A DNA stretch of 63,028 bases, counting the filler, from Lenisia limosa (lineage: Eukaryota; Protista; Breviatea), in assembly GCA_001655205.1 (NCBI GenBank). It is 7 parts of 7 records of this genome, joined end to end, with 100 filler letters (N's around TTAATTAATTAA, not from the genome) between each part and the next. Parts side by side here need not be neighbours in the genome. Positions count along the whole stretch, not along the records: positions 52,347 to 58,692 come from LPNZ01009700.1; 6 more parts are not named here. One strand, 5' to 3'. Under the pieces are notes generated by a model that did no database searches, had not been told where the DNA came from, and saw nothing but the letters and a program-made list of their open reading frames with translations. Numbering within the stretch: position 1 is the first letter of the stretch; each line of letters starts with the position of its first letter. Position numbers and translations under genes: made by a program. Below, piece by piece: positions 52,347 through 58,692 of the stretch.

Positions 52347-52349
52347 TTA

Positions 52350-53990
52350 GAAGAAGAGTTCTTGAATATTTCAGGTAGTGTCACCACGGAAATTGTGGGC
52401 ACAGTAAATCAGATAGCTTTGTCATTGCTTTCATTGAAGTTTACAGAGTGTAGGCAGGTGAAGCCTAGTTTCAAAAATCACGACCTCGTTATTGTAAGAC
52501 CCCCGCCACTTGTATCATTAACGTCATACCTTGTCTTGCTTCTCTCATCAGAGCAGTCATCTCATGCCGCACATGCTGACCAGACATTTCCTTGACACGC
52601 GTTTCTTTGAGTTGTTGAACTACAAGGAGATAATGTACAGAATTGACAACTTTTGTTATCCAACGAGGAGTAATTTATTCTTCTGGTATCACTCCCTTTC
52701 TATTTCCAACTAACCTTGGGCTTTCAGCAGGGCGTTTTCACGAATTAGCCCTAGAATGTTAAGTGAAAAGATGAGAGAATCATAGAATCATCCCTTTTGG
52801 AGAATCACTCGAGTAACCCAAGTTTCCTTCCAACTTTCGGTTGAATCTACAGAGTTGGAAAAGAATGTCGAGAGCAAGAATTGAAGAATGTTCTCGAAGC
52901 ATATATGAATGGAGGGCCCTGATTACCTTCATCTTCTCCACTCATAGAATCGATGGGATCGGTTCGACAAGATGATGGTGGAAGTGATGCAACCTTAGAT
53001 CATAAAAAGATGACACTCAATCTCATTTGAATATTTAATAAACTGTTCACTATGTCACTATGTGTCATCAATTGGTTAGATTGTTGATGAGGTAGTTTGT
53101 AAAAAAATACCCAACCGAGGAAGCAGGGGATCCTGAAGAAGGACCAGCTAAACGTCTCAAGGCTTCGTGGGTTAACTGAATTGTTATGTGGAAAAATTGT
53201 AAACGTACAAATCCTATTGGTCACGTTAGGTTACCTTAATGGGCGGTGCTTGTAATATGCCAGTGGTATTAGCTTAAAGCATTAGATGAATGTGCAACTT
53301 AACACGATCAAGTGAAGATACGGTTTGAAATTGGTTACGGCAATTATTACACAACTTGATATAGTATAAGTCATACACTCCCAACCATTTTGTGCTGGTT
53401 TGTAATTGTCTGTTGCCAAAACATGTTCGTCCATATCTTCCTGCGTCTTAGAATATAAGAAATACTGGGCGGGCGTAATGAGATACAATGGTCAGCCTAT
53501 CCTCTCCAAAATTTGATGCAATAATTAAATGAACTCCTTACATCTGTGAATAATTTCGGCACTTCAGGAGGGCTTATCTGAAATTGTATAAAAAACAATT
53601 GGATAAGGAAGATAGCTTATATTCAACAAAAATACCTGGTTAAATTGTTCCAAATAAGAATGGCAGGACGAATGATCAAAAGGCTGCTCTAGAGTGTAAA
53701 ACAACAATTGCACTGAATCAAGTGTACTATACCTGGAATTCTTGGATTCGGAAAAGTGATGTGTGGCTCTTGATCTAAACGTAAGCGCAGTAATTATGTT
53801 CTTGAAAACAACCCACCACCTGGGATAAATCGCAAAGGTCAATCTGGATACCTTGGGGGTGAGGGAACAAAGGTAGATGCTCAATAAGATACTTGAGGGG
53901 TGTTGCTACAGCGGCGTTCTAGAAAATGATTCAACTGACAATGGTGACAAGTCGAACTTGGAATACTACGATCCAAAATGTATTCATGTC
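52350..53990 (-). CDS. Multi-exon gene of unknown function
   Basis: Series of short GT-AG-bounded open segments (IKSHTSLFRIQEFQ, ISPPEVPKLFTD, EDMDEHVLATDNYKPAQN, LTHEALRRLAGPSSG). No family recognised. Confidence 0.35.
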
Positions 53991-54533
53991 TACCATTGAG
54001 CCTTCAGTCAAAAGAGAAGGAGAATGAATACCATACCGATTTATTTTGAGATGTTTCCATCAATGCGACGATTTATTAGAAGAGTAAAATAAATGATGAT
54101 TAGAGAGATAATAGTATTCTCTTGGAGTGAGAGGAGGAGTCAGCTCAAGGTTTGACCAAAAGAAATCGTACTTGCCATTTTGGGACAAATGCCAATGGTT
54201 TACGATTGAAGATCTCTATTATTGTCAAGAATTGTTTTAGTAAGTTATTATTTTTTTAGTGTTATTTTGGAGCAGTTTTGGAGTGAGGGGGCATGGGATA
54301 TTTCAGTCAAATCGCGCCCGTAAACGCAAACCGCAAAACCCACATTTATCTTGCCTGTATCCGGGGCTCCGAGCGACGCTTGCGGAGCCAAACTCAAGGG
54401 GATTTTGGGGGTTCCAGAGTGGTCAATCAGAAGCAGATCAGAAGTCTATTAGATAATAAGATACTTTATAACATAATAACATACTAACATAATAATAACA
54501 TCAAATCGCAGAATGGCTTGGTGTTATTAAAGG

Positions 54534-57500
54534 ATGGTAGAGATTAACACGTTTCATCTTGTCTTGCTGCTCCAATGCCTACTGCTGGTCCATGGAGCAT
54601 TTATTACAGATCGCAATCATCTTCCTGAAAGCTTTATGCAAGAGTGGGGGGTCTTTTTATGTTACAGCATCTCCTATCCGCCTTTTACGTGTCAGCATTT
54701 TTCTCCATCAATCATCAGGAGAGTCCCTTTTTCTATTGACCCAGTTAGCGAATCTATTTTGTTTCCAATTTCTTACCAAGAAAACTGCGCTGCATGTCAA
54801 GCCCACGCTCGTAAGCTCCACCAAAGCTAAATTGTAAACGTTTAAACCCCCTCCATATTTAAACATTTTTCCAGTTTTACCCCCCTCACATTCCAGTTGC
54901 AGGGGTAATGAGTGATCGTCTCTGCCGAGCGGAAGAGTACTGTGAACCCTTATCAATTGAGGTTTTTTTGGATACCATTTTTAAATTAGGTTTTTTGTTT
55001 TGCTTTTTACTGGCACTACTCTGTCATTATAATTTTATCCACCAATGTTGCGGGAAGTGAAGCGTTCAAGCAATTATATACTGCCCATGGGTACATGTTT
55101 TATGTATTCAATTCAGCAATCTTGTTGAACATTTGTTTACCCTGCAGCAACTTATCGCTTGTGGAGTGGAAGGTGATGGCTGTTCGTCAGGGTCGGTGGC
55201 GTCCCTTTCCCAATACGCCTGTATGTGATGTGTGATAGCTGCATGGTTATATAGTGTGCTTAGTTAAGTTTCCTTTTTGATACATTAACACCAATGACAT
55301 GATATAGCTGCAAGCGGTTTGTCTTCGGCAAAGGTGGGTTGGTCCGGTAGAATTTCATTTCCCCCTTGTTACGATTGCCGGATAAAAAAAATGAGGGTGT
55401 ATTATTATCTGTTCCAAATGGTTTGTAAATCATTTTAAGAACATTTGTTGTAATTTGCTTCATTATTTATTTGTCTATTTTCACTTCGCCTCCATGTAGG
55501 ATTATCCACTTGTGTCGGTCGAGTCACCGGATCAACCCTGTGATGCTAGTAAAATCAGTGGGGGGGGGGGGGGNNNNNNNNNNNNNNNNNNNNNNNNNNN
55601 NNNNNNNNNNNNNNNNNNNNNNNNNNNNNAATGTTTTGATTTTGATAACATTGACACCTCTAATAGTATTTAGAATTGAAGGCTTATTTACACGGATGGT
55701 CTGGACTGGCAGACGGCTCTCCCGAAGAGATCAAGGTTTGTCCCAGCTGCTATAACCGTTTTGATCTCTTTTTTTGTTATCATCTCATTTTACAACCGCT
55801 TTTGTAGTTTATCGTATCAAAGAAATCCCTTTACTCTTTGCAGCTTGCACTTGTTGATGGGGGTTCTATGACAGCTTGGCTTTTCTTGAAGGAATCATGG
55901 AACTCACATACTTCTGGTGGGTTTAATTTTCCTTTATTTTCCGTGGTGAAAGAAAAACTCTCACTCATTTTCCTCCTATTTAGGAATTTATGACCCCAAC
56001 CCTTCTGAGGATCAAATATCAACCCATGTTACTCGGCTGGTCTGAAGGGGGGGGGGGCATTCAAACGTTTCTTGTGTTTTATGCTTATTTGATAATCACA
56101 TTCATTTTTACTACCCTTACTTAAGTTATATTCCTTTAGGTTGGGTGGAGTGTTGAACCGACTGGTGAAGAATACTGGATCATTGCCAATAGCTACACTG
56201 GGCACAATCAGGTATGTATGCGCCAAACCCCTGTCGTTAATCCACTTTTCCGAATTCCTGAAAAACATTGAAAAATGGACACCCGTTTTTATAACTTAGG
56301 AACGCTATTTCTGGGACTCTGGTACTGGTAAGAGGCTTTTGGTCTGTTTGCTCGCGTGCAATTAAATATAACAAAGATGGTATTAATACAAAATCGACAT
56401 GATAACCTGAATCCATTCTCAATTTTACCTTCAGGATCCCGGGGATACACACGACTCGCAATGTATAGTGACGTCATGAATGTTGAATCCGGAACTGGAA
56501 CTGCATATCCATGTTTTGGAAAATGTCCAACAAGTCAGATGGCTTAATTTCAGTTCCTTTTGAATATGTCCTTGGGCTTCCTTACTGCATTAAAAGAATT
56601 TTTTTTTTTTTTGTACCGTAGAAATCTTGTGAAACTCCCTGGTGATGCCAAAATTCGGCAATTTCCTTATGACATTAGAACCTACTTGCGCCGGACGCAC
56701 AATCAACACAGAATCCATGACTGGAACGTCAGGCTGCTCTGGTACTGTTGATATTCTCTCAAGCTGCACTGTTACGTGAGTCACAATATGCCGGGATTAT
56801 CTTACGCTGTAGTTGTAAATCCGGTTATTGGACTCCTGATTCCGCTACCATTTCACAGTGTTTGGTGTGACGGATATTTGGTATTATTGATGATTATCTT
56901 CATTGTCTTCTGAACATTGAAATGGAAATGTGTTTAGTTTTTCTGTCAAGAATTGCCCACTTCTTTCTGATTGAATAATGGTGTAGAGTGACGGACAGTG
57001 GTCCAAACCGATCCCAACCTGTATCCGTAAGCAGAAGCATTTGATTGAATCCCTATACGAATGTATCTAATCCTTGTTTAGCTAATGGGCAGAAGTTGGA
57101 AAAGGGTCATATGTGTGAGACTGATAATCAGTGTTCAAGGTGGGGACACAACCTCATATTTCCATATAACCTATTCAGTGGCTTTTGCTCGCAGGGTGTA
57201 TGTTGTGAAGAACGATGCAATGCTGGCTGTCGAACTTGTGCACGTAAGGGGTCGAGATGGGGTGTCCATGAAATAAGTATCATTTTTTATCTTCGCTAGA
57301 TACCCTCGGAACCTGCACCAATACCCCGGCTGGTGTCAGAAGCTTTGGCTTCTGCGCAGTATCCAAGCCTGAGGAGTGTGGAACCACGGGCAACTGTGAT
57401 GGGAACGTGGGAAGGGGGTATATGAAGACGAATGTGTCCCCTTTGTCTAATATTATTAGTTTAGATATCATGGGTAGGTCAATAACCGGGGTCTCATATG

Positions 57501-58662
57501 ATTACAGGGAGGCTGTGAAACTGTTGCTGACGGAACGATGTGTCGTGGCCGATCCTGCACTGAGGATCTTACTGCAGTTGGGGGGAACGTGTCAAATACC
57601 GCTTTTGTCTAAATGCTTCTCCAATATACATATTTTTTTATAATGACCATTGCTTTTATGGTGTTGATTCACAGTTCTTCATTTTCATGATTTAGTCAAC
57701 GGAAGCGTCCAGATGTGTGAATGGAGCTTGTCCGATATCTTCAAAGTTCAACAAATGTGCAAATGGTAGGATCCAAGTTCAATTATTCCACTGGATTTGT
57801 TTTATTCAATGCCTTTACTGATTTGTGTAGGATACATTTGCAACGAGTGGGAGTGTCGTGAGAAGTGTTATTGGTATGCTTGGTCAACCTTGTGCTTCTT
57901 TTAGGTCGAATAGCTTCATATCATAATAATATACTATAGTATATAGATACATGATATATTTATCATATGCATAGTATATCATATGTATTATGATATGATA
58001 TGCGTTAGAAAATTACATGGAGATTGGAAGAGCGCATTTGTTTGCTGTATCTTATTTAAAAGGCCGTATCAGTGTCAAACCGGCTTCCGCTGTAATGATA
58101 TCTCCAAAGAATGTGAGCGAAAAAAGAGTGTAGGAGACGTTTGCTCTGAGAATGATGAGTGTCTCTCTGAGTACTGTACAAATGGTGTTTGCTGCATCAC
58201 AAGCTCGTAAGAGGGGAGGGAAAATGTAACCGTTTTATTATTCATTCCTCAGAGCTCCTGGGTGTTCTTTTGTATCATTGTCACCATATTCCTCCTGGAT
58301 TCTACAATGTTGTGTTGCATCTTATTTCCCTACTAGCTGTGGAACATGTCGTCGCTGCGATGTGACCAGTCAGGAGGGCATCTGTACGCCAGTCAAGAAG
58401 TTAGGGCTGGTTTATGGCTCAGTTCCGTGCTGCTCAACTCTCCTCTGCTTTTGACATCAACAGGGGAACCGATCCAAGTGACGACTGCTCTGCGTCCACT
58501 GGCGATGATTGTCCCTTAAATGGTATGCCTCGCTTGCACCCTAAAAGAAATCCCAATTAAATTCTCAAATTTATTGTATGATCCCCTCTAGGTGAATGTA
58601 ATGGAAACGGTTTCTGTGACAGAAGTCAAGGCCTTGAATGTGGTCAAGCAAAATGTCAAGGT
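54534..58662 (+). CDS. Secreted papain-family (C1A, cathepsin B-like) protease domain + Sushi/CCP-like module + Cys-rich repeats; 3' end lost at scaffold break
   Basis: Signal peptide MVEINTFHLVLLLQCLLLVHGA; LPESF; YQENCAACQAHA/LAGVMSDRLC; LSIE/QLIACG..GDGCSSG; DYP; GIY; STHVTRL/VGW..EEYWIIANSY; GYTRL; then CSCKSGY...QCLV/SDGQWSKPIPTC; then C-x5-C-x-SG-x-C-x2-GVCC repeats. Confidence 0.85.
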
Positions 58663-58692
58663 AAGGGCTTCTGTCCTTATTGTAATTGGTTG

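Follow-up and report, generated by a model that had tools for sequence, protein, structure and literature searches.

A predicted gene of Lenisia limosa joining a cathepsin B-like head, a Sushi-like module and cysteine-rich units of Polyangia type

Papain-type (C1A) peptidases in which the catalytic head is followed by a cysteine-rich C-terminal extension are already known, for example cruzipain (PMC8440672) and the granulin-domain proteases of plants such as triticain-alpha (PMC5535888). Among bacteria, TraA of Myxococcus carries a PA14 head, cysteine-rich repeats of the TIGR04201 family and a MYXO-CTERM (PMC3325183). Here we describe a gene predicted in the protist Lenisia limosa (Breviatea; assembly GCA_001655205.1), in which a C1A head appears to be followed by a Sushi-like module and by cysteine-rich units of a type found in Polyangia. 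The window is a stretch of 63,028 nucleotides (nt), in which seven parts of this genome are joined with filler; the analysis covered the piece at positions 52347-58692, which comes from record LPNZ01009700.1.

Like cruzipain and triticain-alpha, the predicted protein has a papain-type head and then a disulfide-rich C-terminal part. In those two enzymes, however, the extension is one short domain unrelated to the unit described here and the propeptide is kept, whereas the Lenisia protein would carry a CCP module and at least two units of 150 residues. With TraA it shares the design of a functional head placed on cysteine-rich repeats at the cell surface (PMC3325183), but the repeat family of TraA (TIGR04201) differs from our unit. 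What would be new is not the C-terminal cysteine-rich extension of a C1A head, but this combination of parts. A protein predicted to combine the lack of a propeptide, a CCP module and intron-split units of Polyangia type was met in none of the searches made, which worked at the level of single exons.

We read the locus as one spliced gene for a secreted or surface protein that is composed of a signal peptide, a cathepsin B-like C1A domain, a Sushi/CCP module and at least two units of Polyangia type, the units being of myxobacterial origin and working as a stalk. The probability that we attach to this reading, with the stalk and the origin included, is roughly 0.6.

Gene model and the C1A head

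Three-frame translation and a listing of phase-compatible GT...AG pairs yielded one chain of exons on the + strand, running from an ATG at 54534 to position 58660. The chain has 24 exons of 26-144 nt, or 25 if exon 1 contains a 105-nt intron at 54644-54748. All 23-24 introns are of the GT-AG type and 37-189 nt long (median 100); phases are compatible at every junction, and in-frame stops are absent from all exons. The GC content is 0.41-0.57 in exons versus 0.29-0.46 in introns, and the introns are T-rich on the sense strand. The original prediction, made by manual splicing, had put a signal peptide, a C1A domain, a Sushi-like segment and cysteine-rich repeats in this order, and all four parts were recovered at their places along the chain. 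The last exon closes at a GTAAGG donor (58661), 32 nt short of the edge of the piece, indicating that the 3' end of the gene is missing and that the gene continues. Two introns are very short, with 37 nt (after exon 12) and 39 nt. We consider both credible, the 39-nt intron because its removal brings back the exact C-x-S-G-F-C motif seen in the consensus of the bacterial units.

The protease part was searched with a C1A profile of 227 positions, which was built from 106 C1A open reading frames (ORFs) found in 120 giant-virus loci with the Q-G-x-C-G-S-C-W-A-F block. All stop-free stretches of the piece were searched with it, one target per stretch. On the + strand, six exons matched the profile, in the order of both genome and profile (profile positions 9-38, 48-84, 124-156, 148-172, 174-191 and 196-217). 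Their collinear chain scored 18.8 bits versus 3.9±2.0 bits (maximum 10.2) for shuffles within the stretches, and none of 100 shuffles reached the observed score.

Exon 1a (54534-54643) is open from the ATG and ends at a GTGGGG donor (54644). It encodes a signal-like peptide which, read by eye rather than with a predictor, has a hydrophobic core and the small residues V-H-G ahead of the predicted cut; L-P-E-S-F, the presumed start of the mature protease, follows in the same exon at most 10 residues later. Exon 1b (54749-54810; profile 9-38) carries the oxyanion Gln and the catalytic Cys in the block Q-x-x-C-A-A-C-Q-A-H-A. When aligned to Q-G-x-C-G-S-C-W-A-F, the Gln and both Cys are conserved. 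The papain-like spacing from L-P-E-S-F to the oxyanion Gln suggests an intron between the two halves (54644-54748), although the unspliced exon 54534-54810 is open as well. Exon 2 (54897-54961; CAG acceptor, GTAAGC donor, phase 1 junction) continues the active-site helix with the motif S-D-R-x-C and joins exon 3 on the profile. Exon 3 (55148-55220; profile 48-84, 8.5 bits, E=0.034) encodes G-D-G-C-S-S-G, which corresponds to the G-C-N-G-G block of papain. Exon 4, a C1A linker of 26 nt (55308-55333), was set by the best phase-compatible junctions on both sides, and exon 5 (55500-55557) holds the D-Y-P ... C segment. These are followed by exon 6 (55674-55735), placed by junction phase and the C1A profile, and by exon 7 (55844-55916; profile 124-156). 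The catalytic His lies in exon 8 (55984-56039; profile 148-172) within T-H-V-T-R-L, and the catalytic Asn in exon 9 (56140-56211; profile 174-191, 6.7 bits) within Y-W-I-I-A-N-S-Y. Exon 10 (56300-56327), with 28 nt and phase-compatible junctions, is an insertion relative to the C1A consensus, and exon 11 (56435-56533), which matches the C1A profile and has a weak GTCAGA donor, forms the C-terminal end of the domain.

Family scans with single exons were nearly empty because the exons are too short. Exon 9 matched Pfam Peptidase_C1 with E=0.069 and 13.7 bits (cut-off 20.7), and its weak matches in the PDB were to cathepsin B (best) and cathepsin X; phmmer searches of the PDB with exons 1, 2, 3 and 11 found little or nothing. 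A degenerate pattern of the active-site block gave only off-frame chance matches in GC-rich DNA when genome and metagenome contigs were scanned, and these scans brought up no close relative of the protease head from bacteria or metagenomes.

In the profile alignment, Gln, Cys, His and Asn are all present at the C1A positions. The predicted domain is thus complete, as had been claimed, with regard to the four catalytic residues and the collinear six-exon match, but it is divergent and lacks a propeptide. The motifs S-D-R-x-C, G-D-G-C and G-W-x-V-E...Y-W-x-x-A-N-S, which we take to be marks of the cathepsin B branch, point to a place of the head within this branch; they are common to the Lenisia protein and the cathepsin B-like C1A peptidases, as is the catalytic set. 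Cathepsin B, however, has a propeptide and an occluding loop, and the Lenisia protein would have neither. The occluding-loop region of cathepsin B spans about 75 residues, whereas exons 4-6 leave about 40, and from the G-L-x-S segment to the next helix they equal the loop-less consensus. A profile search for the I29 propeptide found nothing upstream, and the exon as predicted leaves no room for a propeptide, one of cathepsin B type included. Other differences from cathepsin B are the long C-terminal extension, the substitutions Trp26 to Gln and Trp177 to Tyr, and the loss of the third papain disulfide, which is gone at both partners together, while two of the three are retained. In addition, the G-S before the catalytic Cys is replaced by A-A.

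These features bear on the question of whether the domain is an active enzyme. TINAG-type proteins reportedly use a cathepsin B-like domain as a binding module, and a pseudo-protease of this kind would agree with the lack of a propeptide, with the replacements at Trp26, Trp177 and G-S, with the lost disulfide and with the low score on the C1A profile. On the other hand, all four catalytic residues are kept at their aligned positions, two of the three conserved disulfides remain, and the third was lost at both sides jointly rather than at one. We therefore regard a mere binding module as unlikely. Protease biochemists would take an interest in a C1A peptidase able to fold without a propeptide.

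The piece contains one assembly gap, an N block at 55574-55629. Exon 5 ends either at 55557 (GTGGGG donor) or, in the same phase, at 55548 (GTAAAA donor at 55549), and its donor is followed first by 16 consecutive G and next by the N block; from there, 44 nt of AT-rich sequence closing with TTTAG lead to exon 6 at 55674. In the paper on the Physarum polycephalum assembly it is warned that small exons can be hidden by scaffold gaps (PMC4758236). Here, exons 5 and 6 are both in phase 1 and abut on the C1A profile, and the distance from the D-Y-P motif to the next helix is 40 residues compared to 38 in the C1A consensus. The phase match and the abutting exons place the gap within the predicted intron 5 (55558-55673), so that no hidden coding sequence is needed, and the C1A alignment argues against a small exon at this site. 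The Lenisia piece resembles the Physarum assembly in its small exons, in pyrimidine-rich introns of about 100 nt with homopolymers, in a gap at a mononucleotide run and in the short scaffold (PMC4758236); this is a resemblance only. Mononucleotide runs were seen in three introns: G16 to the left of the gap (55558-55573), G13 in intron 8 (56046-56058) and T15 in intron 11 (56597-56612).

Sushi-like module and its links to both neighbours

Exons 12, 13 and 14 probably encode a CCP module. Exon 14 (56987-57026), which encodes the C-terminal segment D-G-Q-W-S-x-P-x-P-x-C of the module, matched 27 PDB chains with its 13 real residues. All of them are CCP proteins, including complement receptor 2 (E=0.0029), decay-accelerating factor, E-selectin, Crry, factor H and MASP-1, and all alignments fall on the C-terminal end of the CCP module, G-x-W-S-x-P-x-P-x-C. 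These matches bear out the Sushi-like segment of the original prediction. Exon 13 (56813-56864), with the segment C-x-x-G-Y ... C, gave weak matches to pappalysin-2 and factor H-related protein 2. Exon 12 (56679-56775), the N-terminal half, was placed by its junction phases and is followed by the 37-nt intron; on its own it matched no Pfam or NCBIfam family and nothing in the Atlas, and no exon-level Pfam scan returned Sushi. Given the 37-nt intron, the Cys are spaced by 30, 14 and 12, which on reading agrees with a CCP module; two additional Cys occur in the N-terminal half, and the Pro after Cys1 is missing. The exon matches establish the CCP identity of the predicted module for its C-terminal third only.

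Between the Sushi-like module and the repeats lies an intron of 55 nt, whose donor (GTAAGC) is strong. The link of the module to the protease is an intron of 145 nt, which starts with the weak GTCAGA donor at 56534 and holds a TAA at 56542-56544. If the protease gene ended at this TAA, the Sushi and repeat exons would form a separate gene or isoform; the weak donor with a stop 10 nt downstream would allow this, and no homology spans the junction of exons 11 and 12. However, only about 100-145 nt lie between the protease and Sushi parts, too little for an intergenic region, and a phase-compatible junction of exons 11 and 12 exists. The downstream part also has no signal peptide of its own, as its only ATG opens a non-hydrophobic peptide, whereas extracellular cysteine-rich modules require secretion. 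Because of the missing downstream signal peptide and the spacings of 145 and 55 nt, we favour one gene over two: protease, Sushi-like module and repeats are probably encoded by a single transcript, and two separate products appear improbable. A short protease-only isoform, made through unspliced intron 11, is possible beside the full-length product. A tiny exon encoding S-C-E-T-P after exon 11 was also considered and was rejected, since it runs into a stop.

Cysteine-rich units and their relatives

In bacterial relatives of the repeats, the motif recurs in tandem every 145-161 residues, indicating that the real unit has about 150 residues. The cysteine-rich repeats of the original prediction are thus present, as one complete and one incomplete unit, but the unit is about twice as long as had been outlined. 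A profile built from 28 bacterial units matched exons 16, 17, 18, 21, 22, 23 and 24 in order. The best chain, which takes exons 16 and 17 of unit A and exon 24 of unit B, scored 51.2 bits versus 9.6±2.6 bits for shuffles that keep the Cys content, and none of 100 shuffles reached it.

Unit A (57082-58140) is complete, with about 155 residues, and consists of exons 15-20 (57082-57139, 57179-57243, 57300-57406, 57508-57576, 57696-57765 and 57831-57873) and the first part of exon 21 (58063-58140). The matches to the profile are at positions 9-34 for exon 16 (19.7 bits, E=2e-5), 34-76 for exon 17 (15.4 bits, E=4e-4) and 121-149 for the first part of exon 21 (11.0 bits, E=0.0099); the match of exon 18 is reported at 36-88 (8.5 bits, E=0.058), but its residues align only at about 69-88. 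Unit B (58141-58660) is incomplete at the piece edge and is formed by the second part of exon 21 (58141-58206; profile 1-20, 13.8 bits, E=0.0014), exon 22 (58337-58399; 21-43, 3.5 bits, E=2.0), exon 23 (58464-58522; 39-63, 6.2 bits, E=0.29) and exon 24 (58592-58660). Exon 24 is reported at 93-123 (16.1 bits, E=2.6e-4); by reading, we place it at about 63-86, on the first of the two C-D-G-x-G-x-C motifs of the unit. The two units stand head to tail, with unit B beginning inside exon 21, immediately behind the closing K-K-x-x-G-x-x of unit A. In the first 30 positions, as read from the alignments, unit A lies nearer to the consensus of the bacterial units (about 53%) than to unit B (about 33%), which shows that the units are not a recent duplicate.

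Among the models of Pfam and NCBIfam, none covers the unit: Dickkopf_N, DUF7107 and EB were all that appeared, below or mostly below their cut-offs. In the case of exon 21, EB scored 17.3 bits (cut-off 24.3) and DUF7107 12.4 bits. TIGR04201, the TraA-type cysteine-rich repeat of Myxococcales, matched neither the exons of the window nor three bacterial unit proteins (P0034, P0046 and P0055). The unit of about 150 residues looks like an undescribed repeat family, and since it is abundant in Polyangia yet lacks a model in the copies of Pfam and NCBIfam searched, it merits a family description of its own.

Relatives were sought in several ways. A phmmer search with exon 21 (47 residues) against 1.84 billion representatives found 59 proteins, and those with the full motif of the original prediction have bacterial-looking lipoprotein or signal N-termini. 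Named relatives from this search were a protein from a metagenome-assembled genome (MAG) of Myxococcota (MCG3172124.1), one from a MAG of Myxococcaceae (MHB8873286.1) and a TIGR03382-family protein. An Atlas look-up of exon 21 gave no more than a lead towards Myxococcota clusters (best score 0.87), and a search of metagenome contigs with the same exon found no relative. Word-indexed searches were queried with two unit-bearing proteins, P0034 and P0113, and each gave more than 2000 matches at E≤0.001. Among the best 120 of each list, from which names were taken, the named proteins belong to Polyangia, Polyangium, Sorangiineae or Myxococcales, with the fungus Hyaloraphidium curvatum as the sole exception. 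These names, together with a MYXO-CTERM in one relative, agree with the earlier claim that the repeat pattern is typical of Myxococcales.

The closest counterparts of the repeat part are multi-unit surface proteins of Polyangia (MCG3172124.1, which is P0003; MHB8873286.1, which is P0055; P0066 of Polyangium sorediatum; and P0084 of Polyangium sp. 15x6). They have the tandem unit of about 150 residues in common with the Lenisia gene, and within it the Cys and the motifs G-V-C-C, G-x-D-P, C-D-G-x-G-x-C, P-Y-x-C and K-K-x-x-G follow one another in an unchanged order. In contrast to the intron-split Lenisia gene, however, they are intronless and GC-rich, they have other heads, some carry a MYXO-CTERM, and they are without C1A or CCP. 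The heads of the bacterial relatives are CBM_3, malectin, PA14, CBM_4_9, LamG, Kelch or FG-GAP. Consistent with the earlier claim of a novel architecture, none of 178 retrieved proteins matched the protease or Sushi exons in tblastn, so that the repeats were seen together with either part in none of them; nor did the exon-level searches bring up a close relative for any exon. In the group that includes P0003, P0034, P0046 and more than 2000 relatives, one bacterial protein carries nine tandem copies of the unit with 161 residues each.

The fold of the unit was addressed with an AlphaFold model of the relative P0033, which has a mean predicted local distance difference test score of 67 and is confident in the unit head alone. 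Foldseek found no match to this model at E≤0.001. In VIA, the unit head gave weak matches to Dickkopf/colipase-type modules, namely Dkk4 (Z 4.9), Dkk1 (Z 4.1), Draxin and Bv8.

P0113 (Hyaloraphidium curvatum DFJ74DRAFT_121991) is the sole named eukaryotic bearer of the unit among the matches listed. It is largely made up of this unit, being 43% identical to P0034 and 31-58% to the exons of the window, but it is Ala/Pro-rich and has no protease or Sushi part. P0113, which lies on a contig of 732 kb, shows 43-45% identity to proteins of Polyangium and may represent a second, independent eukaryotic acquisition. Two other proteins, P0035 and P0040, are mucin-like and Thr-rich, with signal peptides, and have a shorter repeat of about 50 residues with the head K-K-x-x-G-x-x-C...C-x-S-G-x-C-x-x-G-V-C-C. 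The head sub-module may thus be spread more widely than the full unit.

Origin and proposed working of the units, and flanking sequence

At third codon positions, the GC content amounts to 0.40 for the protease part and to 0.43 for both the Sushi part and the repeats, and the composition of the introns is equal in both halves of the gene. These host-like values indicate that the repeats are neither contamination nor a recent transfer. A draft assembly with an N gap and a repeat family that is bacterial could raise the suspicion of bacterial contamination or of a chimeric assembly joining unrelated DNA. However, the repeat part itself carries ten spliceosomal introns, its third-position GC content and T-rich introns match those of the protease part, the high GC of Polyangia type is absent, and the sole gap lies within the protease part rather than between the parts. 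We consider such an artefact extremely unlikely.

On the unit profile, introns interrupt unit A at about positions 9, 31, 68/69, 90, 111 and 125, and unit B at about 21, 44, 62 and 86; no position is common to both. Together with the composition and the abundance of the unit in bacteria, these positions fit the acquisition of an intronless block of several units, into which introns were then inserted independently. The repeats thus probably stem from an old bacterial acquisition with introns gained later. Loss or sliding of introns is a possible alternative explanation for the differing positions.

A different origin was weighed as well, in which the repeats would not be bacterial but an old, vertically inherited eukaryotic module resembling Dickkopf, EB or DUF7107, or would have passed from a eukaryote to myxobacteria. 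The sub-threshold matches to Dickkopf_N, EB and DUF7107, found in the window and in bacterial proteins alike, would agree with this, as would the fungal member P0113, the head motif in eukaryote-looking proteins and a composition that is wholly host-like. Against it, the match is ordered over the whole unit of about 150 residues and not merely over a small knot, and thousands of bacterial members with diverse heads stand against one named eukaryotic protein in the two lists of best 120. Moreover, among the 1.84 billion representatives no eukaryotic sequence resembling exon 21 exceeds 49% identity. We give a non-bacterial origin little credence and retain the old acquisition from bacteria as the probable one.

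Going one step further, a eukaryote with a genome resembling that of a bacterivorous slime mould may have captured a block of Polyangia repeats and joined it, via the CCP module, to a cathepsin B-like head without propeptide. The outcome would be a protease mounted on a stalk of bacterial type, to which the described C1A enzymes offer no counterpart. This is a tentative proposal, which we hold to be somewhat less than evenly balanced. Since units A and B have no intron position in common, all ten unit introns would then post-date the transfer. If a single transcript is confirmed, the locus would clearly exemplify how bacterial DNA can enter a eukaryotic gene at the level of a domain and not of a whole gene. 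If the proposal is true, the borrowed part can no longer be told from the host exons by its composition and is interrupted by many introns, and the tandem units without a common intron position offer a natural experiment, on a small scale, in how introns are gained after an event that can be dated.

As for the working of the protein, the disulfide-rich units could form a rigid extracellular stalk or spacer, a role that we infer by analogy to bacteria, where they seemingly stand behind lectin or carbohydrate-binding heads. In the bacterial relatives, arrays of the unit bear diverse heads for binding or catalysis, in some cases together with a tag for surface sorting. In Lenisia, such a stalk would keep the head and the CCP module at a distance from an anchor at the C-terminus; alternatively, the protein would be an extended secreted rod. 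The array of units would go back to an ancient acquisition from a myxobacterium. The composition of the array would have adapted fully to the host, the array would have been fused to host exons for the protease and the CCP module, and spliceosomal introns would have entered later.

Several points weigh against this reading. The gene model is a prediction from DNA, with splicing taken from the sequence alone, and the domain calls rest on exon-level matches and their collinearity, each match being weak by itself. The weak GTCAGA donor and the TAA 10 nt further on make a protease-only product possible. A C1A peptidase without a propeptide would be unusual, and with several residues beside the catalytic ones replaced its activity is uncertain. 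The direction of transfer is drawn from abundance alone, and the unit or its head motif also occurs in one fungal protein and in some eukaryote-looking proteins. The proposal of a stalk draws on analogy only; in its fold, the unit head matches modules of Dickkopf/colipase type weakly (Z 4.9), and the region of the C-terminal anchor falls outside the piece with the missing 3' end.

Upstream of the gene, the AT and GC skews of the region 52347-54250 run contrary to those in the protease gene, and several stop-free stretches that look coding lie on its - strand, for example at 52492-52674 and 53285-53491. Both features suggest that a neighbouring gene, composed of small exons, lies here in divergent orientation. 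Pfam scans of the stop-free stretches in this region gave no family, and an Rfam search found nothing. An AT-rich tandem array (ATAACATA, 3.5 copies), which overlaps an 11-mer repeat, occupies positions 54468-54501, 33-66 nt ahead of the start codon, and may be part of the promoter or of the 5' untranslated region. Another AT-rich tandem repeat, with a period of 11 nt (ATATCATATGT, 3.4 copies, partly palindromic), lies at 57965-58001 in intron 20, the longest intron of the repeat region.

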